Shown here: piece by piece, positions 1 to 40,441 of the stretch
How positions within the stretch are numbered: position 1 is the stretch's first letter
Layout of the letters: every line of letters begins with the position of its first letter
Source of the DNA: Monocercomonoides exilis PA203
Lineage: Eukaryota; Protista; Preaxostyla
Assembly (NCBI GenBank): GCA_001643675.2
Contig: LSRY02000023.1
Coordinates: 1,178,001 to 1,242,000, forward strand
DNA length: 64,000 nucleotides
Direction of reading: 5' to 3'
Program-made: the position numbers and the translations under genes
Notes under the pieces: model-generated
Databases searched by the model: none
What the model was told of the DNA's origin: nothing
What the model saw: only the letters and a program-made list of their open reading frames with translations

Positions 1-3000
1 GGGACGTTTGTTGAACTTCCAAATCAAACGGGATTATTTGTTTTGGAAGGAATGGAATTTGAGGGGTGCAATGCCTGGAAAGGGAAGAATGTGTTTGTTT
101 CTGGATGGGATCTGAGTGAGATTGTGAACAAAGAGAACTTCAAATGGGAGATGAGCCCACAGGAGTTGGGATCATTGGATGAGTTGTGTGGATGGGAGAG
201 GAAGACAACAGGAGAGGGATATGTGATTCCACTGGTTGTGTATTTGTGGAGGAACTGGAGTGGAAATGGGTTTGTTTCGAAGGAAAAAGGAGGAGACTTC
301 AGTGGGTGTGGGTATTCAGAAGCTCCATGTTCATCAGTTGATCACTTATTTTCTCTGAGATATGGAACACTTGGAGGAAGTGAATCACATGTGATAATTG
401 TTGATTTAGCTCTCCTTCAAAATTCATTGCATTTGATTCAGACAGATTCAGACACACAAAAAATATCAATAGAAGGAGAAGAAAATGGAACAGTGCTGAG
501 GGTTGAAGAAGAAAATGAAGAAGAGATGGAAGAAGCAATGGTTGCCTCAGAAGTGATTCTCTCATTTGTGAATGTTTCATTTGTTCTGCCAAATGTGCTT
601 GTTCATCATCTGGCATTCCTCAAATCATCATCAGGGGGTGGGGCACTTTCTGTGAGAAGCTGCTCATTTGTGAGTGAGGATGCTTCAAAAGAAACGAATT
701 TCTGCTTGGTGAGAGTGGATGGAGGGAGCGTAGCGATCGAAGACTGTGCCCTGAAAGAATTCCATTTGTTGCAAGGATTTATGGAATTGTCCTCAGATGT
801 GAGAGTGGCAGATGTGATGAATCTGTCGATCAGTTACACGAGTGTTTCTGGAAGAAGTCTGATACCTATCAGTGAATCTGCTCTCTTATCAGAAAGATCT
901 TTGAAAGAAGCAACGATGTTGAAAAACAAAGTGAATGGAGATGAAGATGGAATGCTATCGATGAGCGTAAACAGCTCAACATTCACAAACATCACACTCA
1001 GTGAAAATAGAGCCACAATTGTGAGTGCTTGTTCATTTGAATGTAAAATGAGATGCTTGGTGGAAGGGTGTGTGATGACGAAGTGTCTGAGTGAGTGGAG
1101 CGAAGAGGGAGGAGGGATGAAGGTGAGTTTGAAGAGCAGAGGGAGTGAGTTGAGAGTGAATGGTTGCATGTTTGGGATGTGCTCGTGCTCAGTGGTGAAG
1201 GGGAGAGGAGGAGGGCTGATGATAGATGCATCTGGCCTGGGTGAAACACAAGCAGGCACAGAGGATGCACCGCCTTTGGGGATAATGATCGAGAGCACCA
1301 GATTCACAATGAATGATGCGCTTGTGGGGAAGGATGTGTTCATCCGGTGCAAGTGGATTGAAAAGCAGATCAATGAGAAGCTGTTCTCGCTGGACTTCAG
1401 CCAGGAGTCATTGAAGTCGAGCAACTCGATTTGTGGAAGCGATGAAGAGAAAACAGATATTGATCTGATCCCGCTGATTACATTTTATTATGGGCAGCAG
1501 GTGTTTGTGAATGCGAACGGGAGGGATATGCGACAGTGTGGAGAGCAGACGAATCCGTGCAAAAGCATCAGCTGCAGTGTGGATCACATTCAAAGAGGTG
1601 TTGTGAATATTGTTTTTATTGATGAAGAAGGAGATATTGGAGGAGAATGTGCGATTGGAGATTTGAGTGTGAAGTCAATGAAGAAGATGAAGGCGACAGT
1701 CCATTTCAATGAAGCAATTCAAGAGATAGGAAACGAAAGGAGTGTGATTGTGTTTGCGAATGAGTGTGTTGTGGAGCGGTGTGTGTTTGAGTTTGGGGAG
1801 TTGCACGAAGCAAATCACAGCCACATCATGAAAGTGAAGAACGGAACAACCATGATGAGGGAGTGCGAATGCTTGTCATCCACAACTGAATTAATCATTA
1901 CCAGCACAATAATGGCAGTTGAAGGGGGAGAACTGGAGATGAACAAGTGTGCACACACAAGAATGAAATTATCGGCACCTTTGATAGAATTTGTTGGGGA
2001 ATCTGAAGCAACAATATCAGAAACAAGAATAGATAATTTGGAATCAGAGGGAAATGTGATTGAAGTTGGAGACAGAGCAAGAGTGGAGATGAAAGAGTTG
2101 GATATTCAGAATATCACTCTCTCAAAAAGTGGAAGTGTGGTGAAAATGAAGAATGTTGTGAAAAATGTTGATTTGTCGAACTGTTCATTTGGAAAGTGTT
2201 TGAGCCCAAAAGAGAAAGGATCGATTGTGTCTGTGGATAATTGTGTTGATTTGGATTTTGATTCATGTAGCTTCCTTGGGAATTTTGAAGACGAGACAAG
2301 AGAAGAATGGGGAAAAAATGGCAGAATGGAAGAGATGTGCAGATGGAATGGGTCAATTGTGGACGTTCAATCCAGCAATGTTGGGATGAAAGACACCACA
2401 ATCAGCAACTCGAAGAACGGCGGGCTTTCATTGTCAGGAGGAAGTGTGGAGATATATGATGGGAGATTTGAGAACAACAACCCGTCGATAGTGAATTATG
2501 GATCGGCACGAAGAAACATTCTGTGTGGAGGCTCAGGAAGATTGAGGGTTGTGAGCTTGAAGGGAGGTGATGGAGTGAAGGACAATACCTCTTTGTGGAT
2601 ATTGGATGAAGGATGCACACTGGAAGGGATTGCCGGAGAAAGAGAATCACCATTTTTCATCCCGAGGGTGGAGAGTGTGTCATCGGAAAAGTCAGGGGAG
2701 GTGGTGGATGTTGTGTTCAGAGGATCAGTTCTCCTTCCGTGCAACCTCTCGTTCAAGACCGTTGCAGCAGTTGGGGATGAGGAAGTGGTTGAGAAATATT
2801 TGTTTGATGAAAGTGGTTTCATATCAGAAGAAGAGGTGCATGGGTTTGTTCCTGTCAAGACAGTTGAAGGGGTGGCAAGCGAAGCAGAAGTGAGGGTGAG
2901 TATTCTGTTTGGGAGCGCTGATTCTCCATCAGCCACTGATTCTTTCGTTCTGAAGAACAGGAGTGAATCCAAAACAAGTGGAGATGAAAGGATTGCCGAA

Positions 3001-4344: not shown

Positions 4345-7300
4345 TGGGAAACAACACACCAGAGAGATTGTGCTTAAAGAAGGATTAGAAGAAGAAGAAG
4401 AAGAAGATAAGAGCGAGCGAAACATTGGGATAACACGAGCTTTTCAATCTGACTTGTTGGCACTTTTCAGAATATTTTTCTGGAGTTTGAGCCATGATGA
4501 TATGATGATGGCAATGAATGCAAAAAAACAATTTTTTTTTTCAAAAAAAACTTTTCATTTCTTTTTATTCCTTTTTTGTTTATTTTTATAAGTTATGGAA
4601 AGGAAATTGGGGTTTGTCATCCATTTTTGTGGGGTTGTTTGAATAATATTTGACTCATTGACTCGTTTGTGCTCGTTGTTCTGTTTTTCTTTTTTATTCT
4701 TTTCCATTCCTTTTATGTTTTCCTTTTGAAGTTTTATAATTCTTTTTTAAAAAAGATCACTGGCATTTTCTGTTGAAGCAACAATTCATAAATATGTGTG
4801 TTTTTTCAGCATTTCACAAATTCGTTCCCAAAAATAAATGAGAAAAATACGAGAGAGAAATGATGCAGTTGCGATTGGCAAGCTCACTGTCTTTTCTGGC
4901 AAAGTTGCTGATTAATCTCCCACATGGAAATATGGTTCATGAATGGTCGAAGCATGAAAAAATGCAGCAGGAGTTATGGAACAGCAGCACAAGGAAGATA
5001 AAAAAGAAAATAAATGAAATCGTCTCTGACTTGAGTAATCAATGCAAAGCACATGGATGAGATATATAGCTGACTTTTTTTTTCCTGACTTTCCACAAAC
5101 ACTCTCACTGGAAGCAATGGACATCTTTGAAAGTCTTCAAATGGACATTTGATTTTTTTTTTTTTGCAGAGCATGTATTTTCTGGTTTGTTAAGCAGGAA
5201 AAGAGATGTTTTATGAACTCTTTGAAACCAAATTCAATTTGTTAGATAATTTTCAATTTGACAAAAAATTTAGTGGGAATTAATTGTTGATTTTATTCAG
5301 ATAAGAAATCGGTTCAAATTGGACAACAAGGTGATCACAAAACATCTCTCTTCCTGCTGCACAAACCAGAAAATACATGCTCTGCAAAAAAAAAAAAAAT
5401 CAAATGTCCATTTGAAGACTTTCAAAGATGTCCATTGCTTCCAGTGAGAGTGTTTGTGGAAAGTCAGGAAAAAAAAAGTCAGCTATATATCTCATCCATG
5501 TGCTTTGCATTGATTACTCAAGTCAGAGACGATTTCATTTATTTTCTTTTTTATCTTCCTTGTGCTGCTGTTCCATAACTCCTGCTGCATTTTTTCATGC
5601 TTCGACCATTCATGAACCATATTTCCATGTGGGAGATTAATCAGCAACTTTGCCAGAAAAGACAGTGAGCTTGCCAATCGCAACTGCATCATTTCTCTCT
5701 CGTATTTTTCTCATTTATTTTTGGGAACGAATTTGTGAAATGCTGAAAAAACACACATATTTATGAATTGTTGCTTCAACAGAAAATGCCAGTGATCTTT
5801 TTTAAAAAAGAATTATAAAACTTCAAAAGGAAAACATAAAAGGAATGGAAAAGAATAAAAAAGAAAAACAGAACAACGAGCACAAACGAGTCAATGAGTC
5901 AAATATTATTCAAACAACCCCACAAAAATGGATGACAAACCCCAATTTCCTTTCCATAACTTATAAAAATAAACAAAAAAGGAATAAAAAGAAATGAAAA
6001 GTTTTTTTTGAAAAAAAAAATTGTTTTTTTTGCATTCATTGCCATCATCATATCATCATGGCTCAAACTCCAGAAAAATATTCTGAAAAGTGCCAACAAG
6101 TCAGATTGAAAAGCTCGTGTTATCCCAATGTTTCGCTCGCTCTTATCTTCTTCTTCTTCTTCTTCTAATCCTTCTTTAAGCACAATCTCTCTGGTGTGTT
6201 GTTTCCCATCACTCATCCTCTTTCTTCTCATCAGCGCTGTCCTTCTTGCTCAATTCTCCCACAAGATCAACCGCATCCGACATCGTGAACACAATCGCCC
6301 CTTCCGGAAATCGCATGAAAAACTCTCTTTTCAGATCTTCCAGCCCAGGCCTCTCCTTGCCTTCTGCGCCATCCCGCTCGCAACCTCCCCAAGAGACGAC
6401 TCACAACCCACCAACATCTTCGGCCTCTCCCCATCTTTGATCTTCTTCCCCGCCATTTCTGCCTCATACTCCCCAAACGGGATCTGCAGCGTCAGACACT
6501 CCCACAGCATCATCCCAATCGAAAACACCACCGACTCCTTTGTTGCCCCCATTTTCCTGTTCATCAGCAACTCGGGCGCTTTCCACCGCAAACACTCATA
6601 TCGATTGTCTTCCTCATCCTCAAACGCCGATGAGGGCAGAGAGTCACTTTCATCATCATCATCATCACTGGCAGATGTCACAACTGTTGATGAAGAGATG
6701 GACGAGGAATCAGAATCATCAGACGAGAAGTCTGAATGCATCACAATGCAGATCACCATATGTTCTGAAAACAACACAATGTGAGGACTCAGATTGGAAA
6801 GTGATGAAAGAGTATTTTCCATCTCGTCAAATGAATGGAGAGCTCCATTCGCCACCCAGAACAGGATTTGAGCAGCTGTCTGCTCTCTTTGCTGAAGACT
6901 CCCAATCGCCATCTCTTTCTTCTCATTCCTCCCATGCAACAACATGAACAGAGAATCCCTCAAGTCAACAATCAGCTTTTCATGTGGAGACGAGCATGCC
7001 ATGGCATCCACCAGATTCGACATCGATGAGGTGGTTGGACACAGATCATCTCCCCGAACAAAAGTGGAATCTGAATTAGTTGTTGAAGTTGTTGAAGTGG
7101 ATGAAATGGAAGGTGATGGCGTTCTCTTTCTTGTCTCTTCTTCCTCCTCCTCGTCCACTTTCTCCAGAGCCCAATCTGGAATCTTGTCTGAATCTCTCCC
7201 CAGAATATATTCAGTTGAGCCACTCTCAGATAGAAGATGCTCAGATGACTCCGAATGTCCAAGGCTTTTCGCATACACTCTTTTCTTTATCCTCTCCTCA

Positions 7301-10300
7301 TTCTTCTTCTCTGCCTCTCTTTCGGCTCTTCGCCACTGTTCCTCAGGCGACATCTCCATCGTCATCATCTCAATCAGCTTTGGATCCTTTTTGATATTGT
7401 CATTCACAATCTCTCTCAGATCTTCGTTCTCATTTTTAGCTTTTCTCCATCGAACAATAAATATTACAGAAATAATCAGAACAATCAAAAGAATAATTGC
7501 CATCACAATCACAATTATTGGCCATATCGATCTTTCTTTCTTTCCTCCTTCGGCAATCCTTTCATCTCCACTTGTTTTGGATTCACTCCTGTTCTTCAGA
7601 ACGAAAGAATCAGTGGCTGATGGAGAATCAGCGCTCCCAAACAGAATACTCACCCTCACTTCTGCTTCGCTTGCCACCCCTTCAACTGTCTTGACAGGAA
7701 CAAACCCATGCACCTCTTCTTCTGATATGAAACCACTTTCATCAAACAAATATTTCTCAACCACTTCCTCATCCCCAACTGCTGCAACGGTCTTGAACGA
7801 GAGGTTGCACGGAAGGAGAACTGATCCTCTGAACACAACATCCACCACCTCCCCTGACTTTTCCGATGACACACTCTCCACCCTCGGGATGAAAAATGGT
7901 GATTCTCTTTCTCCGGCAATCCCTTCCAGTGTGCATCCTTCATCCAATATCCACAAAGAGGTATTGTCCTTCACTCCATCACCTCCCTTCAAGCTCACAA
8001 CCCTCAATCTTCCTGAGCCTCCACACAGAATGTTTCTTCGTGCCGATCCATAATTCACTATCGACGGGTTGTTGTTCTCAAATCTCCCATCATATATCTC
8101 CACACTTCCTCCTGACAATGAAAGCCCGCCGTTCTTCGAGTTGCTGATTGTGGTGTCTTTCATCCCAACATTGCTGGATTGAACGTCCACAATTGACCCA
8201 TTCCATCTGCACATCTCTTCCATTCTGCCATTTTTTCCCCATTCTTCTCTTGTCTCGTCTTCAAAATTCCCAAGGAAGCTACATGAATCAAAATCCAAAT
8301 CAACACAATTATCCACAGACACAATCGATCCTTTCTCTTTTGGGCTCAAACACTTTCCAAATGAACAGTTCGACAAATCAACATTTTTCACAACATTCTT
8401 CATTTTCACCACACTTCCACTTTTTGAGAGAGTGATATTCTGAATATCCAACTCTTTCATCTCCACTCTTGCTCTGTCTCCAACTTCAATCACATTTCCC
8501 TCTGATTCCAAATTATCTATTCTTGTTTCTGATATTGTTGCTTCAGATTCCCCAACAAATTCTATCAAAGGTGCCGATAATTTCATTCTTGTGTGTGCAC
8601 ACTTGTTCATCTCCAGTTCTCCCCCTTCAACTGCCATTATTGTGCTGGTAATGATTAATTCAGTTGTGGATGACAAGCATTCGCACTCCCTCATCATGGT
8701 TGTTCCGTTCTTCACTTTCATGATGTGGCTGTGATTTGCTTCGTGCAACTCCCCAAACTCAAACACACACCGCTCCACAACACACTCATTCGCAAACACA
8801 ATCACACTCCTTTCGTTTCCTATCTCTTGAATTGCTTCATTGAAATGGACTGTCGCCTTCATCTTCTTCATTGACTTCACACTCAAATCTCCAATCGCAC
8901 ATTCTCCTCCAATATCTCCTTCTTCATCAATAAAAACAATATTCACAACACCTCTTTGAATGTGATCCACACTGCAGCTGATGCTTTTGCACGGATTCGT
9001 CTGCTCTCCACACTGTCGCATATCCCTCCCGTTCGCATTCACAAACACCTGCTGCCCATAATAAAATGTAATCAGCGGGATCAGATCAATATCTGTTTTC
9101 TCTTCATCGCTTCCACAAATCGAGTTGCTCGACTTCAATGACTCCTGGCTGAAGTCCAGCGAGAACAGCTTCTCATTGATCTGCTTTTCAATCCACTTGC
9201 ACCGGATGAACACATCCTTCCCCACAAGCGCATCATTCATTGTGAATCTGGTGCTCTCGATCATTATCCCCAAAGGCGGTGCATCCTCTGTGCCTGCTTG
9301 TGTTTCACCCAGGCCAGATGCATCTATCATCAGCCCTCCTCCTCTCCCCTTCACCACTGAGCACGAGCACATCCCAAACATGCAACCATTCACTCTCAAC
9401 TCACTCCCTCTGCTCTTCAAACTCACCTTCATCCCTCCTCCCTCTTCGCTCCACTCACTCAGACACTTCGTCATCACACACCCTTCCACCAAGCATCTCA
9501 TTTTACATTCAAATGAACAAGCACTCACAATTGTGGCTCTATTTTCACTGAGTGTGATGTTTGTGAATGTTGAGCTGTTTACGCTCATCGATAGCATTCC
9601 ATCTTCATCTCCATTCACTTTGTTTTTCAACATCGTTGCTTCTTTCAAAGATCTTTCTGATAAGAGAGCAGATTCACTGATAGGTATCAGACTTCTTCCA
9701 GAAACACTCGTGTAACTGATCGACAGATTCATCACATCTGCCACTCTCACATCTGAGGACAATTCCATAAATCCTTGCAACAAATGGAATTCTTTCAGGG
9801 CACAGTCTTCGATCGCTACGCTCCCTCCATCCACTCTCACCAAGCAGAAATTCGTTTCTTTTGAAGCATCCTCACTCACAAATGAGCAGCTTCTCACAGA
9901 AAGTGCCCCACCCCCTGATGATGATTTGAGGAATGCCAGATGATGAACAAGCACATTTGGCAGAACAAATGAAACATTCACAAATGAGAGAATCACTTCT
10001 GAGGCAACCATTGCTTCTTCCATCTCTTCTTCATTTTCTTCTTCAACCCTCAGCACTGTTCCATTTTCTTCTCCTTCTATTGATATTTTTTGTGTGTCTG
10101 AATCTGTCTGAATCAAATGCAATGAATTTTGAAGGAGAGCTAAATCAACAATTATCACATGTGATTCACTTCCTCCAAGTGTTCCATATCTCAGAGAAAA
10201 TAAGTGATCAACTGATGAACATGGAGCTTCTGAATACCCACACCCACTGAAGTCTCCTCCTTTTTCCTTCGAAACAAACCCATTTCCACTCCAGTTCCTC

Positions 10301-10506
10301 CACAAATACACAACCAGTGGAATCACATATCCCTCTCCTGTTGTCTTCCTCTCCCATCCACACAACTCATCCAATGATCCCAACTCCTGTGGGCTCATCT
10401 CCCATTTGAAGTTCTCTTTGTTCACAATCTCACTCAGATCCCATCCAGAAACAAACACATTCTTCCCTTTCCAGGCATTGCACCCCTCAAATTCCATTCC
10501 TTCCAA
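43..10506. repeat. Giant inverted repeat: arms ~43-5190 and ~5361-10506, imperfect inner extension to ~5212/5339, spacer ~126 bp
   Basis: Mirror-image ORF track (e.g. 299..616- / 9933..10250+, 4860..5060+ / 5492..5692-). Direct comparison shows only a 3+1 nt deletion near 6355-6378 and homopolymer length differences. Confidence 0.97.
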
Positions 10507-13500
10507 CACAAATATACCAATCTCCTCTGAAAACTTCACAAATATCCCTCCTCCTAATCCTTTTCCCCCTCTTTCATCCTCACTTGATGACACTTTACAT
10601 CTTTCAAACTTCACTCCCTTCATCTTCAAGCTCCCTCCATTTCCAACTCCTATCATCATTCCTCCTCCTCCTCCTCCTCCATTTCCTCCATTATTCTCTG
10701 CCTTGCATCCATCAAACGTGGTCGATCCATTTATTTCAACCTCTTCATCTTTTCCAATTGAAATCTTCATTCCTCCACCACATCCATCTTTCTCCTCAAT
10801 ACAACATTCACTGAATGTGCAACCAGAAACAACAATAATAACAGCAGCAGAAGCATCTCCACTCTCACTTTCACTTTCACTTTCCTCACATATTCTTTCC
10901 AAACAGCTTCCCCCTCCAGTTCTCCTCGTAATTCCAGTTAGAACACAATTCGAAAGTTCAGCAATGCCATCTCCAGTGCATTTAATAATTGGATTTGACA
11001 AGGTGTTTATTTGACCTTTGTTCGAAAAGCCTGCCATGTGCAGCACTCCTCCATCAACATGAAAAACACAGTATTCAATTTCATTCAACAAATTTCTAGC
11101 GGAAGGCTCAACTGAACAATCACTGACACTCAATGCATTTGAAGAGGAAAAGACGAATGATGAGGCTGGAGAAAGAGTTGATGGAAGAGAAAAGCACATA
11201 TCTTTCAGCAATGCTCCGGATGAAATGCAAATCAAACAATCTGAGTCAAACAGAGGAGAAGGCACAACAACATCAACGGCAGTGTCTCCAATCGTTCCTG
11301 TCACATTCCAAAAATGTCTTTCCATCACAATCTCTTCACAGAGCACAAATCCATTTTTGATTCTGATTGTTCTTGTTTCATCCCCATACCACACCTCAAC
11401 CACTTTGTTGATCGATGAGCACGGATACTGCTCCATTCCACATCTGCTGAAGTCCAAGCTTTTCTCTCCTCCCACAAATCCAACATCCCCGTCCTCCATC
11501 AAAAATGGAAGAAGTGGTGCACACTCCTCCCGGCACCCATCCTCATATCCCAATAAGTCACTGTCTATCATCCCTTCACACTCAAAGCCAAATGTGGCCT
11601 TGTTCACAACATCTCTCAAACACTGTGCATTCACAAATATATTGTTCCCTTTCTCTGCTTGGCAACTCTCAAAAGAAGCACAATGGATACAAATAGCACA
11701 ATTCCCATCACACACATCCAAATAGATTGCTCCGCCAAACCCCCCAACTCTATTTCCCTTCCCCGCACAGCAACAATTGATGAATGAAACATTATCAACA
11801 TTCTCATCACCACTTTCACTTGAGACATTCCCAATCTCCATCTGTGAGCCTTCGTTGAGCTGAATCCACATCCCTCCTCCGCACCCATCTTCACACTCAC
11901 AATTCTTTATCATTCCTCCTGAGATGTTCACATTCATCCCATTCACCAGATTCCCACAAATCACACTCCCATCTCCACTCATCCGAGAAATCTCATTAAC
12001 CTCGACGCTCTTCATCTGGAAAGATAATGAGCTTTCGCCTCTGATGTTGAATGCAGGAACTGATGAAAACGATATTCCACTGATCTCAACTGAGTCAAAA
12101 ATGACGGATCCCATCTGGACGATCATTAGTGATGCTGTTAACACACAGCTTTCATCGTTTCTCAATGAAGTGATTACACACTCACACATATTCAGAACTC
12201 CTTCTTTTGCCAACATTTCCATCAGATGAGAAGATGGATTCTCTCCACAAACAAATGTGATTTTTCTGAAATTTCCCGTTCCTGTTCCAATGACCACCAA
12301 CGATTCTCCATTTGGTGATCTGTTGTGAACAATCACTTGAGTTTTGTCTTTCCCTTCAAATGATATCTTCAATTTTCCAACTTCAACTTTGTTTTCTTCA
12401 TAATTCCCAACTTCAATAATCACTTCATTGCTGCTTCCATCAGTATCCAGCACTCTCATTCCAAACTCGATTGTTTTGCATCTCCTTCCATATTCATCTC
12501 CTGTCCTCACAAACCCACAGGCCATGTGATCCAGTCCTTCCATTGAGTTCACAAACACTGGATTGAAGAAGATCTTTGGAATCCATTTGTTGTATTCTGT
12601 TGATCCTTTGACCACTCGATTGCTGTTTGCACTTGTGCTTGAACGACAATGTACAAACGAATTTTCATTGATGCTTGTCCATCCCTCAACAACATAAACA
12701 TCATGGCCCAGATTCACTGCTATGTTATTTGAAAAGAAGCAAAACAAAGTTGGCGACTCATTTTCTCCTGGGATGTTATCCCAACTTATTCCTGCTCCAT
12801 TATTCTCGCTGAATCCACCACAAAATGAGCAATCAGAAATCACAGCAGTTCCGTGATTATATAATCCAACGCAACCACCACCATTATGTAATGTTGTGTT
12901 CTTTCTGCAGCAGTGAAATGCACAATTTTCAATTATCCCTTGATATTCATTGTATTCAATGAAAATTCCTCCTCCAACTTGTTTGGTTGAACTTTTCGAG
13001 AAATTTGTGTTCTTCATCGAAAATGTTGAAACATAATAAAAATCAATACAGCCTGATGATGCTTCTGCTGAACAATAATCAAAACTGGATGAAGTTATCT
13101 CGAAATTTTTACCATCTATTCGAGAAGAAATCGCTCCACCACACCTAGAAGAATGGCACTTATAAAAACCACACAGTGACACATTTAAGAGACCAGAAGA
13201 AGTGAATAAAATTGCGCCACCGTCAATTTTTGATGAATTTTCAGTTGAAAGGTTGTTGAAATCACAATCCACAAATGTTGCATCACCTGAGTCAACAACT
13301 TGACTTTTCATTGTCTTGTTTCCAATCATAGGATCTGCATTTTCCCTCCGAACGCATTGAGAATAACTCGAATTCCAAGCAAAGAAATGATGATATCCTG
13401 AATGCATCCCTTCGACCAATCCTCCACCAAGTGGAGAATTCACTTTCTCGACAATACATCCAACAAAAGAATAATCATTTTTCGAGTTGCCCATTGAATT

Positions 13501-29981: not shown

Positions 29982-32686
29982 TTCAATTCAAATGAAAAAC
30001 AGTTCATATTAAACAGAAAAAATCCAAAAAAACAAAAACTTATTACAAATATATCCAATTGCGAACACGCCATTCTTAAAGATATAAGTATTTTGACAAG
30101 TTATAGAAAATAAAAGAAGATAGATTAATCATATTTGTTTGTTGTTATGGTTGTTTTGATCAAGTTGTTTTCAAAATACGAAAATTTTTCTTCAAAAATT
30201 CAGGATCGAGGGATGAAATTCTGTTTCGGAATTAGAACAATTATTTCCTTTAGTTATGCTTGACATTGAAAACGATTCTTTTTTTTGTAGTTCCATATGA
30301 TAATTTTTGAAAATAGGCTGACAAAGGAAATTCAACAATTTTATAATCAATGAAAAAATCTGCATGTTTGCATTTTATCACTGTTCTATGGATTGTGAAA
30401 ATATCTATATGTAACCTTCTTAGAATCCAGAAATATGAAGAATTAATTAAATGGTTAATATTTCATTTAAATGAGATGAATTTAAGAAGAGATCTGATTA
30501 TTGTATAGCGATTGAGAAATAAAGGAATATGTGCAACTTTCACACTTTTCATAATTTTTGTTTGGAGCAAGAGGTGAAGATAAATTCGACTGTTGCTTTT
30601 TTGAATGAAGATTTATGGATGAAATTCTGTGAAGGACAAAATCTGCACAAAATTATATAGCATTTTGGAGCATAAGGCAAAGGAGAAGCTTTTTTGGCAA
30701 GGAAAGTGGCAGGCAATATCGAGGGAAGGACATTTATTACTTAAAACAGGCAAGAATTCAATGGAAAAAGGAGAACCCCAAAATATCAGTTTTATTTATA
30801 AGGTTTTCCTGTTTCTCGGACTGCGCCAGGCAGACATGGAAGGCTGCGAATTTCTATTTCTGATTCCGCTTTTGCTTCAAAAGAGTGGAGAAACGCCAAC
30901 TACGAGACATCCAATTATCAAGTATTTTTTGGTAATCGAAGAGTATTCACGTCAGCAGCTTTTGGATTTCATTTTTCGAAGGTTCAGCCATTTTGAGCAA
31001 AAGAGGCAATTTTATATTGAAACATATTTCCTTCAGCGTTGGGACGATGGAAAAGAAATTGGAGATCATCATCTTTTTCAATCTTCATCATCATTCAACA
31101 GAATGCTTATTATTGCATCCTTTTTGTATGTTTGTGCATGTGCCATTGGCTTTCTCCTCTTGAACGTCGAAGAACGAGTTTCTTCCAGACTGTGATATGC
31201 AACACAAGCACCGCTGAATGAATGCCGACTTTTTTCATCCATCTTCGTCAGAGTTGAAATGAAGAACAGCAAACTCCTTCAATTCATATTCATCGCATCT
31301 TTCCTTCGTCTTCCAAGCATTTCATCGGTTTCTGATTGTTTTCACTCAAACAGATCGAAGAGTTATATGCTTCAAATACAAAAGACGAATTTCTTCATTC
31401 TTCTTCAACAGCTTCACTTCATCTTCCTTTATCGTCCAATTTTCTTTTTCTCCAACTTTTCCGTCATTCACTCGAAATCCTCAACTTAAACAGTAATTTT
31501 CTGTTTCTGTGTATTTCTTCGAAACTTCTTCATTTTCTTCTTCTTAGTTGTCTTTTTCTCCATTTCCATTTTTTATCTTTTCCCTTCGCTGAATGGCAAA
31601 GCGTCTATTTCAGTTCTATTTTCTGTTCAATCAGCAGACAATAAAACCTCCCCAAACTGATTTCTTCTTCTTCTCATCATCATCATGCTTAACATCTTCA
31701 AATAATTCCCCCAAACCACCTGAAATTAATTTTTCTGCGTAGTGCTGCTCTGTTTTTTCGGAGGATAATTCCGCAAATCGGTTGAAAAAAAAGACATTTC
31801 AAATCAAAATTTCGTGAAGCATGCCAAATTGATAGAAGAAGGAAAAAAGAGAGAAGAAGGAAATAAGATGGACATTGGAGGAGAGAAAGAGGAATTGGTC
31901 AGTGAAATGCTGTGAAAATTGGAGGAAGTTTTGAAAAGAGGAGAGCAGTTGAGCATCAGAAGAGAGGAAGAAAGAGACTGTGAATGAACATTTGAAACAA
32001 CAAGAGCAAAGCGTTGAATGAAGATTGATTGTCTGATATATTTAGAGAAAATCAGAGCAGCTGGTGAAGAAAGACTTGCTGTTTTATTGCAATGGACAGG
32101 GAGAAACTTGATGATTCGAAACAACACATTTTCAAAGGCAATTCTAAGGGTATGCATTTTGATGTGGTATTTTTGACTTTTTCAATGTTTTTATTGGACA
32201 GATGTTTCTATTTGATGAGTTTCTTTTTATTTGTTATCTGTTCATTACAAATATGAAGAATTCAACATTTCCGAAAAACTCAATCTCTCTCAAATAATGC
32301 AATGTTTTAATATTACTGTGAAAGCAATGCATGGCAGATTCTTTTGATGCGTAAAATGAATCCAAACCTATCGCACTCTCATCTTTGCCCTTCTTTTTAT
32401 GAGTATTTCTTATTTTTTCAAACTTCGCATCTTATTATTTTGATTTTTTTATCTGGACATGATTTGATAATTCCTCACCTACACCAACAAATACTGGTTC
32501 ATTCCTCCAAACAGCCGTAGAAATAGCAATGTTTTGGAAGGGTCTCAGAAGTTTTCCAAATGCCACTAAATATTTATCGAAAGAAGGCTTTTACTCTTTA
32601 AAAATGTTCTCAAAACAAATATTAAGGGCTATTTGATCAAATAAAAAATACTCAATTTTTCAAATCAAAATTGACATTCTTTTAGC

Positions 32687-35600
32687 ATGAGAATGCATTT
32701 GTTTCTTTTGGCATGCTTGCTCCTTGCAGATACATTTCAAGTGCAACATTCCTCTTCCGCTGCCACATCCAGCAATCACGATTATCGGAAAAACACCTAT
32801 TTTCACAATTTCATCATTGATCCGGATCGAATTATTGAACAAGATGAGCATTATCCCACAAATAACAATGATCATTATTTATTTGAACGAAATATATTAT
32901 TTGGAGCAGAAAGACAGCAGTCAGGAATTTCGACAGTAATTAATGCATTTTTGGGATTCTCCAATTCATCAGTTGGACTGAAAAATGTGGCACTTGAACA
33001 TTCATCATCATCTTTTGTGCTTCTAACAGAATACTCAACTCTGATGATGGACTCCTGCATATCCAACCAAAAGTCAGATTCTCCTTTTCATCTTCAAAGT
33101 GGGTCAATCAACATGGCAAACTTGAGTGTGATTCCTCAAATGAACGTTAACTCTTCCAGTCTCATATTTTCATCTGATGATTCCAATTCTGCCATTTTGA
33201 GAAATTCCATCATTGCTGACCTGGTTGTCTCATCATCAGACAATTTTCTATTGTCTGGAAAGAGCCAAAGTGAACAGATTATTAATTGTGCCTTCAGGAA
33301 CATGTCTGTGAAATATGCCTCGAATAGCTATCATTTTGCGGAACATTCATGTTTTCGCAGTTCAATGGAGAATACATTTATTTATTCGTGTGTGAATGCC
33401 TTTGAAGGAGGGATCTCGAGTGGATCCTATTCTTCACAAGAGTTTATCTGCAAAAACACAACAATTAACTTTGGGAAAAGAGAAATGAATGATCTTGAAA
33501 GAAAACAACGAATGGACACAACAGAAGGCCAATCGTTTTCGTTGTGCGAATGGGTTGACTGCACGGCACCGCAAGGAGGTGCCCTTTATGTGCATGAAAA
33601 TGAAAATGCTATTTTGACTGTTGAGAATTGTTCATTCACGAGATGCAATGCTTCCTCAACAAAAGGGGGAGGAATATATGCATTGAAAATTTCGGAATGC
33701 ATTGTGATCCATACAATGTTTGCTCAATGCTCGGCGCTTGCAACCACCGATTGTGGAGGAGGAGGAATTATGGCAGAGAATGTGCATGTTCAATCATTTG
33801 TTGATGACTGCTCATTTAAAAACTGCTCTTCAGGAAGCGATGCTGGAGCTTTAAATTTCCGTCCAACAAAAACTGAAAGGCAGAAGGAATGCATTATCAA
33901 TTCCTTTTTCATCAGTTGCAGATGTAATGGATCATCTACTGGTACGGGAGGTGCTGTTGAACATTTTTTTGGAACAGATAAGGTTGTAATTTCAAATTGT
34001 TTGTTTTGTCATTGCTATTCAATGAGAGGAGGAGGAGCAGTTTCGCAGAATGTTAATGAATATAATAATGGAATTTTATTGTATTTTTGCTTTTTCCACA
34101 ATAATACATGCGAGCTTGCAGGTCATGATATTGTTCTTCATGATTCAACATCAAACAACATTGATTCAAGTTGCTATACAACCAGGCAAACATTAAATAG
34201 AGTCAGCTTGAGTTATATAAATAAAAAGGACCAAAGCGATTGGTTGCAAAACAATTTTGGAAGAATCAGATTTGCTTCTTCAACTGATTCAAAACAAAAA
34301 GGAATTGACACATATGCATGTGGCTTGGATAAAAGCCATCCGTGCAACACTATCAGCCATTGCTTGACTCAACTTATTCCTAACTATGTGACTGACATCG
34401 AGATTCTCACAGGAAAAATAAAAGAGACCAAGAGTGTGGACTGCAGTTCCAACACTTTCACAATATATGGCCAAAGTGATATGAGCACAGCAATCCAAAC
34501 AGAATTTGAAGAATCAAGCTTATCTCTTTTTTCAGTCTCTACAGGCACATTTTCAGTGAGAGACTTTGTTCTTGTGCATGACTCGGCTCATCCGAATAAT
34601 CGTGCCTCAAGGCTGTTTGAGATAACTGGAACAGGAGAGATGAGGATAAGTGCGCTGAACATATCTTTTGGGAGTGAGCAATCAGCAGAAACAGCATTCA
34701 CCACAGAGTTGATAAATGTTCAGAGTGGGATCCTTCAGATGAATAATGTAAACTGGGCAAAGACTATCTCCACTGTCTCGTTGTTTTCGCTTTCTTCAGC
34801 AAATGGAATTTCATTGACTCTTTCTGAATGCACCTTTGATGAGATTGAGAGAACAAACAGTGGAGCAGCTGTGATGTCGTTTTCCAACGACAAGGCAAAC
34901 ATCGATCTGAATTCTTGTTCATTTTCTGGATGTGGAAGCGCAACATCAACTGATGGAGGATCAATGATGCTTTGTGTGGGAGAGGCGAATGAAGTGAAAG
35001 TGAAAGGCGGATCTTTTGATGGTTGCTTTTGCTCAACATCCAATGGTCTTGGGGGAGGAATTCTTCTTCGATTGATGAACGACAATCCCGATTTCCTGAT
35101 TTCTTCTTCCTTTGGCACAAACACAGCCAAGTGGGGAAAAGATATCTTCGTCATTTCACCTAATCTGGAAGAAACAGCAAAATCAGAAAATATAACATGT
35201 GTGACAGATTCATTGGATTCTGTTGACAAAGTGAGAGGATATGACAATGGAAACAACAGTGTTGCCATCCCTCTGTGCATCTATCTCCTCCCTACCACAG
35301 AAGAAATACATTTGAGCAATGTCGAGGCATCCAATCACTCACGCTGTGGAGTAGTCCAATTCCCTTGTTTAACTTTGAAGCACTCGCTCACTCGTCAAAC
35401 AGAAACAAGGAAAGTTGTTGTGAGCGGAATGATTTCAATGGGCGATGAATTGGCCTTTTCTGAACAGAAGCATGAAATCAGAGGAAGCAATGATCAAAGT
35501 GGCTGGACAGTCTCTGATTCAAGTGAAACATCAAACTTAGCGATGATAACAACAAGTGTTGAAACAGAATTATCAAAACTTATCTTCTCTCTTCCTCCTT

Positions 35601-38600
35601 CTTTCTCTTCACACTCCACTTTTATTTCATCATCTTCGCAACTGACTTTGTCTCAATGTTCTCTTTCTCTTCAAAATCCATCATTAGAATTGACAATTCT
35701 GTTCTTGTCCGTTGAATCAGGAATTTTGACAATCGACAAATTCTCAGCTTTATCAATTGTCTTGAATGGAAATCCGTTGATCTTATTATCAGGAAGTTGT
35801 CCAAAGGATGAGTTGATGAGCACCAAATGGTTGAACATGACAAACTGCCGTTTCACAGAAATTGAAAGAACTGATGGAAATGGAGGCTGTGTGAGCATTG
35901 ATAATTGCAACGATGAAAATTCAAATGGCGAAATAAATATTGAAGAATGTGATTTTGATGGGTGTTCTGTGCTGGCTGATGAAAGCAGAGGAGGGGCTAT
36001 TGATGCTCAGTTGAAAGGGAGCATTCAAATAAATATTATTTCATGCACATTCACAGGATGCACAGCACCAGCTGGAGAAGGGAAGATTGGGTTTGGTGGA
36101 GGAATGGCACTGAAGCTGATTGATGATTGTTCTTCATTTGTGATGTCATCTCCTGTTTTTGATTCAGACAAGCCAAATGTTGCGAGATATGGAAATGACC
36201 TCTTTATTGAATCATCCAACTTGACAAAGAGCATCACAAATGCCTCTCTTCCATTTGTATCCAAACATCTGGCAGATATTTCATTGGATTCATTGAGAGG
36301 CTTTGATGGGAATGACACAACGAATGCTATTCCATTGGCGTATTTTTGGAGAACATTTGGTTCTGAAATATTTATTGGAGGTGGTGGAAAAGATGTGTGC
36401 GTTTGTGGGCTTTCTGATTATCCTTGCCAATCAATTGATTATTGTTTGGATCGATTGCCTGAAGGAAATGAAAGGCATGTCAACATCATTGGAAAAGGAA
36501 TTCTTCAGAAAAGTGTTGATGTGAGCGGAGTTTGCATAAAATCAAATGATGAAGAAATGTGCTCTTTGGAATGTCACTCTTCAATTGAAGGAGCCGAGGA
36601 AACAGCAATGAAGACTCAGGGCATCACAAATCTCGAACTGATGAAGTTTGTGATTCCATCTTCATTCGCAAGTGGAGTGAATGTTCTGATCCATGTTGGA
36701 TCAAGTGAAGGACTGCTGACTCTGAAAGACTGTTTATTCTCAAAAAATGAAGAAAGCAGAGAAGAAATAATGAATTACGGGATAATCAAGGCAGATGGAG
36801 GAACAGTTGTGTTGGACATTGTTTCAATGCAATCACTCAGCTTTTCAAAAGATGTCATTTCTATGTTGTCAACAACGATATTGAATGTTAAAAATCTGAC
36901 GATGAAGAATATTGAGCTGGATGGGGCAAGTGGATTGAGCATATCAAAGAGTTCAAGAAGAGAAAAAAATGAAGCTGAACAAGATGTTGTTATTGAGTGG
37001 AGTATATTCGAAGAAGTTGCCCAGAACACAACAGATGATATTCCCATCATTCGAAATGTGAACGATGAGCCATTGAAAATGGTGATTCGAAACACAACGA
37101 TGAAGAAGTGTGGTGGAACAAGGTGTGGAAAGGGAGGAGGGATGTTTTATGTGTTGAATGAGGAAGGAAACTTTGATTTCTCATTTTGCACGATTTCTGG
37201 GTGTTTCTGCTCAACAACAGGAAGAGGCGGGTGGCTGTTTCTCGAATGTCCATCGACTACAGAACATCCTCTGAATTTTGTTCTCTCAAATATCACATTC
37301 AGAGACAACTCAGCATTGAAAGGGAGAGATGTGTATGTTCGATGCCACTCAATCGAAACACAAATTGTTGAAGAGCAATTTCTTTTGGATTTCAGAGCAC
37401 CGTTTGTGAAGGAGCTGGCGATATGGGGTTGCACAACAGACTCATTTGAAGGAGAAGAAGATCTTCTCCTGAGAGTCGTGAAATATCTGAGCGAGACGAT
37501 CTTTGTATCTTCAGTTTCTGAAAATCACAAAAATAGCAAGCAATGTGGAGAGTTCAGCATGCCTTGCCAATCACTGGATGTTGGAGTGCAACACATCATT
37601 CCTTCGTCGTATTCGCAGCTGTTGATCTCGAAGGAGACAGTTATTGTTGGGGAATGCGAAGCAATGGATTTGATCATCCGCTCATTGCAATCTTCCTCAG
37701 CTGCTCTGGTCCATCTGAACTCAACAATTAATATCAATGAGGGAAATCTGATCACAACCTCAGAGACTGTTCGGATTGAAAAATTGAAATTCGATTTTGG
37801 CCAGTCATTTTCATATTCTGGAAGTTCAATCATCCATGAAGCAAATGCCCAGCTGTCTCTTTCATCTGTTGATTTCTCTTCTGTTGGCCAATCAGAGAAC
37901 ATTGAATCTGTTGTTCTCAATTCAACGTTGCTGTGCATCGAAAATGGAATTCTTCATATTGACAACTGCTCAGTGTCACTCATTTCATTCAAGAAGCCTT
38001 CATTTCTGCTTAGTGGCAAAGAGATATCATTGGCAAATGTGAAACTGGAACATATTGACTCAATGGCAAATGTGTTTGAGATTGCTGACTTCAAAGAAGT
38101 TGTATTCAATGGAATATCTGCAGATGGGGTGAGTCTATCTGAGGGTTGTGTCTTTTCAATGAACGAAAAGACTTCAGGGACTGTTTCTGTTGGAAGCTCC
38201 TCGTTCAACAACTGTTCAAGGAATTCGGAAAGAGCTTCTATTCTCTCTGTTTCTTCATCCTCTGCTCAAATTGTTCTTTCAAATTGCTCTTGTTCAAACT
38301 GCCATTCTCTCTCTGAAAAAGGGAGCATCGTGAAGATAGGAAATGCAAGAGATGTTTCAATGAGTCTGTGTCGATTTGACGGAGAACTTGAAGATGAAAA
38401 TGAAAACGAGAACAGAAATGAATTCAAAGAAATATGCAAATGGAATGGGTCAGTTGTGGATGTTCAATCCAGCAATGTTGGGATGAAAGACGCAACAATC
38501 AGCAACTCGAAGAAAGGGGGACTTTCGTTGTCAGGTGGAAGTGTGGAGATTGAGAAAGGGGAATTCATGAACAACAATCCTTCGATAGCGAATTATGGAT

Positions 38601-40441
38601 CGGCACGAAGAAACATTCTGTGTGGAGGTTCAGCAAAATTGAAGGTTGTGAGCTTGAAGGGAGGGGATGGAGTGAAGGACAATACCTCTTTGTGGATATT
38701 GGATGAAGGATGCACACTGGAAGGGATTGCCGGAGAAAGAGAATCACCATTTTTCATCCCGAGGGTGGAGAGTGTGTCATCGGAAAAGTCAGGGGAGGTG
38801 GTGGATGTTGTGTTCAGAGGATCAGTTCTCCTTCCGTGCAACCTCTCGTTCAAGACAGTTGCAGCAGTTGGGGATGAGGAAGTGGTTGAGAAATATTTGT
38901 TTGATGAAAGTGGTTTCATATCAGAAGAAGAGGTGCATGGGTTTGTTCCTGTCAAGACAGTTGAAGGGGTGGCAAGCGAAGCAGAAGTGAGGGTGAGTAT
39001 TCTGTTTGGGAGCGCTGATTCTCCATCAGCCACTGATTCTTTCGTTCTGAAGAACAGGAGTGAATCCAAAACAAGTGGAGATGAAAGGATTGCCGAAGGA
39101 GGAAAGAAAGAAAGATCGATATGGCCAATAATTGTGATTGTGATGGCAATTATTCTTTTGATTGTTCTGATTATTTCTGTAATATTTATTGTTCGATGGA
39201 GAAAAGCTAAAAATGAGAACGAAGATCTGAGAGAGATTGTGAATGACAATATCAAAAAGGATCCAAAGCTGATTGAGATGATGACGATGGAGATGTCGCC
39301 TGAGGAACAGTGGCGAAGAGCCGAAAGAGAGGCAGAGAAGAAGAATGAGGAGAGGATAAAGAAAAGAGTGTATGCGAAAAGCCTTGGACATTCGGAGTCA
39401 TCTGAGCATCTTCTATCTGAGAGTGGCTCAACTGAATATATTCTGGGGAGAGATTCAGACAAGATTCCAGATTGGGCTCTGGAGAAAGTGGACGAGGAGG
39501 AGGAAGAAGAGACAAGAAAGAGAACGCCATCACCTTCCATTTCATCCACTTCAACAACTTCAACAACTAATTCAGATTCCACTTTTGTTCGGGGAGATGA
39601 TCTGTGTCCAACCACCTCATCGATGTCGAATCTGGTGGATGCCATGGCATGCTCATCACCACATGAAAAGCTGATTGTTGACTTGAGGGATTCTCTGTTC
39701 ATGTTGTTGCATGGGAGGAATGAGAAGAAAGAGATGGCGATTGGGAGTCTTCAGCAAAGAGAGCAGACAGCTGCTCAAATCCTGTTCTGGGTGGCGAATG
39801 GAGCTCTCCATTCATTTGACGAGATGGAAAATACTCTTTCATCACTTTCCAATCTGAGTCCTCACATTGTGTTGCTTTCAGAACACATGGTGATCTGCAT
39901 TGTGATGCATTCAGACTTCTCGTCTGATGATTCTGATTCCTCATCCATCTCTTCATCAACAGTGGTGACATCTGCCAGTGATGATGATGATGATGAAAGT
40001 GACTCTCTGCCCTCATCGGCGTTTGAGGATGAGGAAGACAACCGATATGAGTGTTTGCGGTGGAAAGCGCCCGAGTTGCTGATGAACAGGAAAATGGGGG
40101 CAACAAAGGAGTCGGTGGTGTTTTCGATTGGGATGATGCTGTGGGAGTGTCTGACGCTGCAGATCCCGTTTGGGGAGTATGAGGCAGAGGTTGCAGGAAA
40201 GAAGATTGTGAATGGAGTGAGACCAGAGATTGGGATGGCTGAAGAGTCGACGTTGGGAGAGGTCTCGAAGAATTGCATGCTCCAAACACCTTCGGAGCGT
40301 CCATCGTTGGTGACACTGAAGCGAGAGTTTATTCAGAGGTTTCCAGCAGGTGCCGTTGTGATGACAATTTCTGATGCAGTGGACGTTGAAGATGAGACAG
40401 ACGACTGCGAAGAGAGCAATAACAGTAGCTTGGAAGAATAG
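32687..40441 (+). CDS. Receptor copy C (2584 aa): signal peptide, beta-helix-like ectodomain, TM, pseudokinase
   Basis: Intact ORF starting MRMHLFLLACLLLADT; GGAL/GGGI and 'CG...PC.TI' modules. TM and kinase-like region near-identical to copies A and B; ectodomain and last ~84 aa divergent. Confidence 0.9.
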   Translation: MRMHLFLLACLLLADTFQVQHSSSAATSSNHDYRKNTYFHNFIIDPDRIIEQDEHYPTNNNDHYLFERNILFGAERQQSGISTVINAFLGFSNSSVGLKNVALEHSSSSFVLLTEYSTLMMDSCISNQKSDSPFHLQSGSINMANLSVIPQMNVNSSSLIFSSDDSNSAILRNSIIADLVVSSSDNFLLSGKSQSEQIINCAFRNMSVKYASNSYHFAEHSCFRSSMENTFIYSCVNAFEGGISSGSYSSQEFICKNTTINFGKREMNDLERKQRMDTTEGQSFSLCEWVDCTAPQGGALYVHENENAILTVENCSFTRCNASSTKGGGIYALKISECIVIHTMFAQCSALATTDCGGGGIMAENVHVQSFVDDCSFKNCSSGSDAGALNFRPTKTERQKECIINSFFISCRCNGSSTGTGGAVEHFFGTDKVVISNCLFCHCYSMRGGGAVSQNVNEYNNGILLYFCFFHNNTCELAGHDIVLHDSTSNNIDSSCYTTRQTLNRVSLSYINKKDQSDWLQNNFGRIRFASSTDSKQKGIDTYACGLDKSHPCNTISHCLTQLIPNYVTDIEILTGKIKETKSVDCSSNTFTIYGQSDMSTAIQTEFEESSLSLFSVSTGTFSVRDFVLVHDSAHPNNRASRLFEITGTGEMRISALNISFGSEQSAETAFTTELINVQSGILQMNNVNWAKTISTVSLFSLSSANGISLTLSECTFDEIERTNSGAAVMSFSNDKANIDLNSCSFSGCGSATSTDGGSMMLCVGEANEVKVKGGSFDGCFCSTSNGLGGGILLRLMNDNPDFLISSSFGTNTAKWGKDIFVISPNLEETAKSENITCVTDSLDSVDKVRGYDNGNNSVAIPLCIYLLPTTEEIHLSNVEASNHSRCGVVQFPCLTLKHSLTRQTETRKVVVSGMISMGDELAFSEQKHEIRGSNDQSGWTVSDSSETSNLAMITTSVETELSKLIFSLPPSFSSHSTFISSSSQLTLSQCSLSLQNPSLELTILFLSVESGILTIDKFSALSIVLNGNPLILLSGSCPKDELMSTKWLNMTNCRFTEIERTDGNGGCVSIDNCNDENSNGEINIEECDFDGCSVLADESRGGAIDAQLKGSIQINIISCTFTGCTAPAGEGKIGFGGGMALKLIDDCSSFVMSSPVFDSDKPNVARYGNDLFIESSNLTKSITNASLPFVSKHLADISLDSLRGFDGNDTTNAIPLAYFWRTFGSEIFIGGGGKDVCVCGLSDYPCQSIDYCLDRLPEGNERHVNIIGKGILQKSVDVSGVCIKSNDEEMCSLECHSSIEGAEETAMKTQGITNLELMKFVIPSSFASGVNVLIHVGSSEGLLTLKDCLFSKNEESREEIMNYGIIKADGGTVVLDIVSMQSLSFSKDVISMLSTTILNVKNLTMKNIELDGASGLSISKSSRREKNEAEQDVVIEWSIFEEVAQNTTDDIPIIRNVNDEPLKMVIRNTTMKKCGGTRCGKGGGMFYVLNEEGNFDFSFCTISGCFCSTTGRGGWLFLECPSTTEHPLNFVLSNITFRDNSALKGRDVYVRCHSIETQIVEEQFLLDFRAPFVKELAIWGCTTDSFEGEEDLLLRVVKYLSETIFVSSVSENHKNSKQCGEFSMPCQSLDVGVQHIIPSSYSQLLISKETVIVGECEAMDLIIRSLQSSSAALVHLNSTININEGNLITTSETVRIEKLKFDFGQSFSYSGSSIIHEANAQLSLSSVDFSSVGQSENIESVVLNSTLLCIENGILHIDNCSVSLISFKKPSFLLSGKEISLANVKLEHIDSMANVFEIADFKEVVFNGISADGVSLSEGCVFSMNEKTSGTVSVGSSSFNNCSRNSERASILSVSSSSAQIVLSNCSCSNCHSLSEKGSIVKIGNARDVSMSLCRFDGELEDENENENRNEFKEICKWNGSVVDVQSSNVGMKDATISNSKKGGLSLSGGSVEIEKGEFMNNNPSIANYGSARRNILCGGSAKLKVVSLKGGDGVKDNTSLWILDEGCTLEGIAGERESPFFIPRVESVSSEKSGEVVDVVFRGSVLLPCNLSFKTVAAVGDEEVVEKYLFDESGFISEEEVHGFVPVKTVEGVASEAEVRVSILFGSADSPSATDSFVLKNRSESKTSGDERIAEGGKKERSIWPIIVIVMAIILLIVLIISVIFIVRWRKAKNENEDLREIVNDNIKKDPKLIEMMTMEMSPEEQWRRAEREAEKKNEERIKKRVYAKSLGHSESSEHLLSESGSTEYILGRDSDKIPDWALEKVDEEEEEETRKRTPSPSISSTSTTSTTNSDSTFVRGDDLCPTTSSMSNLVDAMACSSPHEKLIVDLRDSLFMLLHGRNEKKEMAIGSLQQREQTAAQILFWVANGALHSFDEMENTLSSLSNLSPHIVLLSEHMVICIVMHSDFSSDDSDSSSISSSTVVTSASDDDDDESDSLPSSAFEDEEDNRYECLRWKAPELLMNRKMGATKESVVFSIGMMLWECLTLQIPFGEYEAEVAGKKIVNGVRPEIGMAEESTLGEVSKNCMLQTPSERPSLVTLKREFIQRFPAGAVVMTISDAVDVEDETDDCEESNNSSLEE

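Follow-up and report, generated by a model that had tools for sequence, protein, structure and literature searches.

The 64,000-nt window analyzed here, positions 1178001-1242000 of contig C18 (LSRY02000023.1) of Monocercomonoides exilis PA203, contains three genes for large surface receptors, which we call A, B, and C. A further 18 kb upstream of the window was added to the analysis, and positions in that DNA carry a minus sign. Inside the window, the three long frames span 43..4344(+), 6331..14373(-), and 32687..40441(+). With the upstream DNA included, the open frames ran from -1781 to 4341 in A (2041 codons), from 14391 to 6334 in B, and from 32675 to 40438 in C. The original prediction, a reading of the window by itself, had described three receptors of roughly 2600 aa. 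This size holds for C (2584 aa) but not for A, which is shorter and in whose open frame, from -1781 onward, no signal peptide was seen. The coordinates of the receptor genes and of the blocks that they share are collected in Table 1.

Table 1. Receptor genes, palindrome, and shared blocks in the window (window coordinates)
Feature	Position	Strand	Remarks
Left palindrome arm	43..5216		palindrome of 10.46 kb
Palindrome-centre loop	5217..5334		unique, 118 nt; also in P1 and P2
Right palindrome arm	5335..10506		
Gene A, 3' 4.3 kb	1..4344	+	x-type fragment upstream, b-type from base 43, then shared 3' module
Shared 3' module ("cassette") in A	2330..4109	+	~235 extracellular juxtamembrane codons, transmembrane helix 3031-3105, most of the cytoplasmic part
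Near-identical core in A	2547-4091	+	lies inside the module
Gene B	6331..14391	-	full-length b-type receptor with signal peptide; tail shortened by two deletions
Shared 3' module in B	6440..8219 (core 6458-8002)	-	inverted repeat of C's module
Gene C	32687..40441	+	intact c-type receptor, 2584 aa, signal peptide; transmembrane helix ~39128-39202, kinase-like C-lobe ~40031-40327
5' part of C's module, apparently unconverted	38427..38643	+	96.8% to P5c, 86.6% to A/B
Putative conversion patch in C	38644..40188	+	99.4% to A/B, dS 0.027
C's own "type 2" tail	40189..40441	+	83 codons and stop; 94.4% to P4c, ~55% to A/B
Segmental-duplication unit with C	30494..43747		colinear with the P4 locus, C18:1103002-1116264, at 91.4%

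A, B, and C are members of the largest gene family of M. exilis, the TKL-like "tyrosine kinases", of which 332 were annotated, mostly as tyrosine kinase-like (TKL; PMC6759080). The family overlaps much of the "unclassified repeat" fraction of the genome (PMC8767320). A protein database search returned 584 family matches at E ≤ 0.001 that were named Monocercomonoides exilis, and a profile of the cytoplasmic domain yielded 1410 first-look candidates in the window's own genome (82.3 Mb, 101 contigs). Proteins of this family, some 2000-4000 aa long, have a type I membrane topology, and in them a fast-evolving ectodomain of β-helix repeats precedes a conserved 3' module. The latter encodes a juxtamembrane segment, one transmembrane helix, and a cytoplasmic part of ~410 aa that ends in a degenerate kinase-like domain consisting of the C-lobe only. 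Specifically, B and C have signal-peptide-like N-termini, a single strongly hydrophobic helix lies ~410 residues from each C-terminus, and one ectodomain scored for the right-handed β-helix family. The B and C proteins are homologous over their whole length and 40% identical overall; the DNA of their ectodomains is ~45% identical and not alignable. The module is the conserved part of the family, with an amino-acid identity of ~70% across hundreds of paralogs.

The cytoplasmic tail matched PF07714 (PK_Tyr_Ser-Thr) with 27.9-43.1 bits against a cut-off of 23.1, which places it in the kinase superfamily. The alignment was limited to profile positions 160-257/258, which start near the APE motif and reach the profile's end. 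Similarly, a profile built from 21 family members matched ~95 residues in the C-lobes of BTK, EGFR, ILK, TAK1, and CTR1 at E values of ~1e-7. Nothing before PF07714 position 160 aligned, and the motifs of active kinases (Gly-rich loop, VAIK Lys, HRD Asp, and DFG) were absent from the alignment; no N-lobe was detectable in the cytoplasmic part with either PF07714 or the family profile. When the catalytic loop was placed by manual reading, its expected site was occupied by the family-invariant SPHIVLFSEHMV...HSDF, in which HIVLFSEH apparently replaces the HRDLKPEN consensus. Because this consensus appears to be replaced and the N-lobe is undetectable, "pseudokinase" is a fair label for the tail, the sequence of which is consistent with a pseudokinase remnant. 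An AlphaFold2 model of the cytoplasmic domain, based on an alignment of 21 sequences, had a predicted local distance difference test (pLDDT) score of 39.9, too low to judge the fold. In the ESM Atlas, the only matches were the cluster of the family itself and generic kinases, and an exact look-up of C's product found no record.

Six paralogous loci, P1-P6, were compared with the window. In searches of the same genome with the module, close copies were found only on C18. The ectodomains fall into two types: type b in A, B, P1b, P2b, P3b, and P6b, and type c in C, P1c, P2c, P3c, P4c, and P5c. P1, P2, and P3 are each a tail-to-tail pair of one b-type and one c-type gene. In tail-to-tail palindromes on this contig, each arm is made up of the shared module, the tail, and one half of the spacer. 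P1 and P2 are palindromes of 5.9 kb that are self-complementary at 97.9% and 98.8%, respectively, and their outer border coincides with the 5' border of the module. P3 (C18:856001-882000) has the form of a decayed b/c palindrome, with arms of 960 nt that are 94.6% identical with 32 gaps; its c-type gene is truncated at 2137 codons. P5c is truncated as well, at 2285 codons.

The window's own palindrome joins A and B, and its arms reach 2.3 kb into the b-type ectodomain. That A and B are near-identical from base 43 on and differ upstream, as had been predicted, was borne out: in an ungapped comparison, identity began at 43-44, and the stretch from -120 to +43 was only ~72% identical. In a gapped alignment of 43-5216 with 10506-5335, 10 of 5174 columns differed, six by indels and four by substitutions. 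All four substitutions lie at 5191-5213, within 26 nt of the loop, and none was found before 5191. Three DNA runs, two of 2022 and one of 2016, all of one sample, yielded exact Logan contigs of 183-223 nt, derived from short reads, that crossed the loop together with the inner end of each arm (5161-5383). The Logan pieces are at most 280 nt long, and the shared core of 1.5 kb exceeds them. Several "joints" listed in Logan contigs were dismissed, as their sides were no longer than 26 nt and lay in a Glu-rich low-complexity stretch. The orientation of the loop relative to the full-length b-type gene is identical in the window, P1, and P2, and by this orientation A's arm sits where P1 and P2 have their c-type partner. 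Colinearity with P1 extends over B, the spacer, and the module of A. Within 5 kb just upstream of A, no small palindromes were found.

Upstream of base 43, A is not of type b. From about -2775 to -120, it matches a third type of ectodomain, x, which is present in dozens of loci at 75-89%. The interval from -134 to +63 is ~70-76% similar to x-type and b-type genes alike, and here the types share a Gly-rich β-helix repeat. A is an in-frame x-type/b-type chimera, and probably a non-functional one. On an evolutionary time scale, ectodomains of this family are therefore re-assorted. Compared with A, P1b, P1c, P2b, and P2c, B lacks AAA between 6375 and 6376 and, 18 nt on, a G between 6357 and 6358. 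The two deletions shift the frame of the tail, with the loss of ~65 C-terminal residues, and may represent either a real pseudogenizing change or an error of Oxford Nanopore Technologies (ONT) sequencing or polishing. We infer that neither A nor B is functional. Among the x-type relatives, more than 25 loci match the fragment at -2775..-120 only from about -1240 onward, at 85-89% and with a sharp common start, and one relative carries ~1 kb extra near -1240. This suggests a polymorphism in repeat number or modules among x-type ectodomains.

The modules of A and C aligned over 2330-4109 and 38427-40206 with 97.6% identity. The cassette of ~1.55 kb that the original prediction had reported, with few and mostly synonymous differences, was found as described: between 2547-4091 and 38644-40188, 9 of 1545 nt differed (eight synonymous changes and one nonsynonymous), and one stretch of 797 nt contained no difference. 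In the 217 nt 5' of this core, there were 29 differences, an identity of 86.6%. In the last 250 nt after 4091, identity was ~55%, consistent with the reported divergence of the last ~84 aa of C, which comprise 83 codons and the stop. The 5' edge of the wider cassette (2330/38427) is the family-wide border of the module rather than a private breakpoint. The modules of A and C are direct repeats; those of B and C, again as stated originally, are inverted repeats of 1.78 kb, ~30 kb apart.

Several results identify the core of C as the product of exchange at the DNA level. The synonymous divergence (dS) between A and C was 0.027 in the core, their ectodomains being not alignable. Between C and P4c, its sister over the whole gene, dS was 0.203 in the core and 0.270 in the ectodomain. 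Between B and P1b, it was 0.137 in both parts, so the synonymous sites of the module evolve at an ordinary rate unless they are overwritten. In a run test on 619 polymorphic columns, A and C shared 221 consecutive concordant sites, a run that none of 2000 permutations reached. Significant tracts were also detected for many other pairs, and their borders varied from pair to pair across the 2-kb module. The paralogs are thus not equally similar in this region, and mosaic breakpoints, for which the original prediction had proposed a recombination test, are present among them. A maximum-likelihood tree of the core mixed types b and c; enforcing a c-type clade cost 123.7 log-likelihood units (approximately unbiased (AU) test, p = 1.4e-39).

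The flanks of the block in C belong to C's own lineage. For the 217 nt on its 5' side, P5c is the best match (96.8%), and for the tail P4c (94.4%). Moreover, colinearity with the P4 locus, at 91.4%, extends over 30494-43747, a segment that takes in 2.2 kb before C and 3.3 kb after it. The block thus combines an internal tract, native flanks, a drop in dS, and an incongruent tree, as expected of ectopic (interlocus) gene conversion. The internal position of the patch, its native flanks, and the P4 colinearity indicate conversion without crossover. The shared core itself fits the A/B lineage and the C lineage equally well. In base composition, GC at four-fold degenerate sites was 0.26-0.35 in c-type ectodomains and in the first two thirds of b-type ectodomains, ~0.44 in the b-type third adjacent to the module, and 0.45-0.49 in the final 2 kb of almost every gene analyzed, a pair from another contig among them. 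The raised values in the module would fit long-term GC-biased conversion.

Across the loci, core identity tracks the locus and not the type of ectodomain. Within loci, it was 100% for P2b and P2c, 99.8% for P3b and P3c, 98.4% for P1b and P1c, and 100% for A and B; it was 99.4% for C and A/B, and 90-95% between loci. P1 and P2 can be aligned colinearly across 19.4 kb, with the palindrome inside this stretch, but their identity is only 89.5%. The palindrome therefore predates the duplication that separated these loci, and its arms must have been homogenized afterwards by arm-to-arm conversion. Indeed, the arms are closer within a palindrome than between copies that arose by the later split. The non-coding spacer halves are likewise identical within P1, within P2, and within the window, so selection on the protein is not the cause.

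A further palindrome was found on contig C32 (C32:686001-710000). It consists of a tail-to-tail pair of 3009 and 3045 codons, with arms of 8014 nt that are 99.94% identical around a spacer of 653 nt. The two genes diverge solely in their first ~1.5 kb, and the module is 75% similar to that of the window's subfamily. Among the best 99 of the 1410 module copies, a hand count of pairs no more than 30 kb apart gave 10 convergent, two divergent, and no tandem pairs; five of the convergent pairs had identical profile scores. Candidate convergent pairs with identical or near-identical scores are C58:236702/245385, C36:537914/542520, C22:982130/988040, C7:602308/609465, C47:296866/323804, C6:726913/731130, and C7:653490/660634. 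The pairs from the profile search are leads, known by their coordinates and scores alone. Convergent palindromes appear to be a general architecture of the largest M. exilis gene family.

From the mosaic structure, the contrast in dS, the incongruent tree, the colinearity with paralogous loci, and the recurrence of palindromes, all of them observed, we conclude that the block in C is most probably a patch of gene conversion within a family of tail-to-tail palindromes, and the outcome of an evolutionary process rather than of a programmed switch. Under this model, non-reciprocal, homology-driven recombination (gene conversion) would hold the two arms of each palindrome at 98-100% identity and would also transfer patches among loci over distances of tens to hundreds of kb. 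One such exchange, of a 1.55-kb patch, would recently have taken place between A/B and C; the latter is a c-type gene that stands alone, 30 kb away from the palindrome of A and B. As for A, a break in a former c-type partner may have been repaired by copying B outward from the shared module, most likely in an inverted-duplication or template-switch event that added 2.3 kb of b-type ectodomain to the arms. Resolution of this repair in a homeologous repeat of an x-type gene would have produced the chimera. The net effect would be a signalling module under concerted evolution attached to diverging ectodomains.

Some observations weigh against this conclusion. The assembly was made from ONT reads with Canu, followed by Nanopolish and ten rounds of Pilon (PMC8767320). 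Such polishing can over-homogenize near-identical repeats, and the figures of 100% may be inflated. Outside the inner 26 nt, A and B differ by indels only, which are possibly sequencing errors. Taken alone, the palindrome of the window fits a very recent duplication as well as it does ongoing conversion. The Logan contigs, at no more than 280 nt, support the centre of the palindrome and not the junction at 43 or the absence of alternative arrangements. The raised four-fold GC could have another cause. Finally, the count of convergent pairs covers the best 99 of 1410 candidates, and most of its pairs are known from coordinates and scores.

The same assembly history is what lends weight to an explanation by artefact, in which Canu correction, fold-back ONT reads, or Pilon would have created A's arm, the near-identity of C's core, or both; the differences between the arms, indels only outside the inner 26 nt, point the same way. 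We nevertheless consider an artefact unlikely. The locus lies 1.18 Mb inside a contig of 1.35 Mb, and the palindrome centre with its loop is present in contigs from runs of both 2016 and 2022 and is conserved in P1 and P2. The junction at 43 falls in sequence of only ~72% similarity, with no long repeat that could have guided a misjoin, and C retains nine private differences. Moreover, locus-specific identity recurs at graded levels, from 94.6% to 100%, a pattern that over-homogenization cannot create. An account by purifying selection on protein or codons, with no exchange of DNA, can draw on the conservation of the module at ~70% amino-acid identity over hundreds of paralogs and on a ratio of nonsynonymous to synonymous divergence (dN/dS) of ~0.15 in the core compared with ~0.3 in the ectodomain. 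It is contradicted by dS, since the synonymous sites of the core diverge normally between loci (0.137 for B and P1b, 0.20 for C and P4c); in addition, the non-coding spacer arms are identical too and the core tree conflicts with the ectodomain types. We regard this account as extremely improbable, and the original argument for exchange of DNA over protein selection stands. The structure of inverted repeats around a spacer would also suit very large transposons with receptor genes in their long terminal inverted repeats. Such an origin is highly improbable given that the spacer is itself palindromic up to the 118-nt loop, into which a transposase would not fit. The only spacer ORFs (open reading frames) of at least 120 aa run antisense over the A and B tails and lay outside the Pfam scans, and the borders of the duplicated units differ among P1/P2, P1/P3, and the window.

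The original prediction went further and proposed that crossovers between the modules of B and C invert the 30 kb between them and swap ectodomains onto different tails, in the manner of a shufflon. Bacterial shufflons and invertible segments (R64 Rci/sfx, Hin/Gin) employ a site-specific recombinase that acts at short, fixed crossover sites. The locus resembles them in having inverted repeats within surface-protein genes, such that recombination would re-assort variable and constant parts. The inverted repeats of B and C, with 797 nt of perfect identity within 1.78 kb, would suffice for homologous recombination, and A is evidence that ectodomains can become chimeric. Somatic inversion, whether programmed or frequent, is nonetheless very unlikely here. 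Had B and C crossed over, each gene would carry a single breakpoint, with everything distal to it swapped; the observed block is instead internal, with C-lineage sequence on both sides, in a locus that is colinear with P4 over 13.3 kb, just as B, the spacer, and the module of A have kept their colinearity with P1. The orientation of the loop is unchanged in three loci. Tract borders are scattered, differing from pair to pair, and define no short, fixed crossover site. Pfam scans, which covered 10 of the 15 ORFs of at least 120 aa that lie between B and C as well as the larger ORFs in the flanks and which spliced genes could escape, detected no dedicated recombinase. Their matches were confined to a DDE_1 fragment, an exon of a proteasome subunit, an ABC (ATP-binding cassette) transporter, and a PapD-like domain. 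The locus thus fails as a shufflon with respect to both recombinase and fixed crossover sites, and differs further in being eukaryotic and in having undergone its exchange as a non-crossover patch. Rare inversion could still find a substrate in the 797 nt of perfect inverted identity, and the direct repeats of A and C could mediate deletion. The proteasome match, to the C-terminal half of the subunit, is an exon-like ORF at 19875-20327(-), which places a housekeeping gene inside the segment that the proposed inversion would flip. The DDE_1 match (E 1.4e-12), also between B and C, is an ORF at 27493-28038(+) that is probably the remnant of a pogo/Tc1-type transposase.

Gene conversion between the arms of palindromes is known from mammalian sex chromosomes (PMC8600007, PMC8327919, PMC8981503). 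The M. exilis loci share with these the inverted arms around a short unique spacer, multi-copy gene families within the arms, a GC-biased signature, and arms that resemble each other far more within one palindrome than they do between copies separated after palindrome formation. They differ in that their arms are 3-8 kb long, as opposed to tens to hundreds of kb, and reside on an autosomal-type contig of a protist. Furthermore, most M. exilis arms end inside genes, giving pairs with a shared 3' module and different 5' ectodomains.

The biologically nearest parallel comes from other metamonads. In Giardia lamblia, variant-specific surface proteins (VSPs) include 14 identical inverted pairs, 10 of them tail to tail, 2-4 kb apart, and with abrupt points of divergence (PMC2996952). 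In G. muris, five tail-to-tail and two head-to-head pairs were described, together with recombination or segmental conversion among VSPs (PMC7641422). As in M. exilis, these are genes of a large surface-protein family of a metamonad, with variable ectodomains and a conserved C-terminal transmembrane region and tail, that lie tail to tail at ~2-4 kb from each other and share an identity that ends abruptly. However, whole ORFs are identical in Giardia, whereas several M. exilis pairs are heterotypic and share an identical signalling module. The M. exilis proteins are also unrelated to VSPs, have a kinase-like tail, and are known here from their genes, not as agents of antigenic variation or as products expressed one at a time. 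With regard to the receptors themselves, anaerobic protists show comparable expansions, of receptor-like transmembrane kinases (TMKs) in Entamoeba and of TKLs in Trichomonas (cited in PMC6759080). These too are large lineage-specific families of single-pass proteins with repeat-rich ectodomains and TK/TKL-like cytoplasmic domains; the M. exilis tail differs in being detectable only from the APE motif to the end of the C-lobe.

The genome papers of M. exilis (PMC6759080, PMC8767320) make no mention of palindromes, inverted repeats, gene conversion, or the organization of this family. The loci are a hitherto undescribed case of a known process, in which palindromic gene pairs evolve in concert through gene conversion, and the mechanism is an ordinary one. 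There is a slim chance that convergent, often heterotypic palindromes organize the family of ~1,400 copies as a recombination scaffold, keeping the module uniform in many receptors as ectodomains diverge and now and then re-assort, with A as an example; rare mitotic crossovers might then vary the receptor repertoire between cells, and convergent read-through might provide control by double-stranded RNA, a mechanism suggested for Giardia VSPs. M. exilis was the first eukaryote found to be without mitochondria, and no gene family in its genome is larger; a module homogenized by conversion would explain why the genes of this family resemble repeats. With the module homogenized in this way, trees and orthology calls derived from the kinase-like part would be misleading. 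Palindromic receptor loci are likewise fragile places for assembly. Beside the Giardia VSPs, they provide a second metamonad example of inverted surface-protein gene pairs.

Other features of the window were noted in passing. Inverted repeats of ~1 kb, 97-98.7% identical, at 28567-29569 and 45564-46566 flank the duplicated unit that contains C. They belong to a family of elements of ~1.2 kb, each with an ORF of ~240 aa that has no Pfam match; 40 copies, drawn from 1404 candidates, scored 71-95%. A copy at 86% (C18:1100070-1101282) adjoins the P4 locus. The ABC transporter, at 51808-56037(-), is full-length, with an intronless frame of 1409 codons that encodes two ABC_membrane and two ABC_tran domains. 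Finally, an inverted repeat of 338 nt, 96-98.7% identical, occupies 57129-57466 and 57878-58215; its arms are separated by 411 nt, and the sequence is AT-rich and non-coding.

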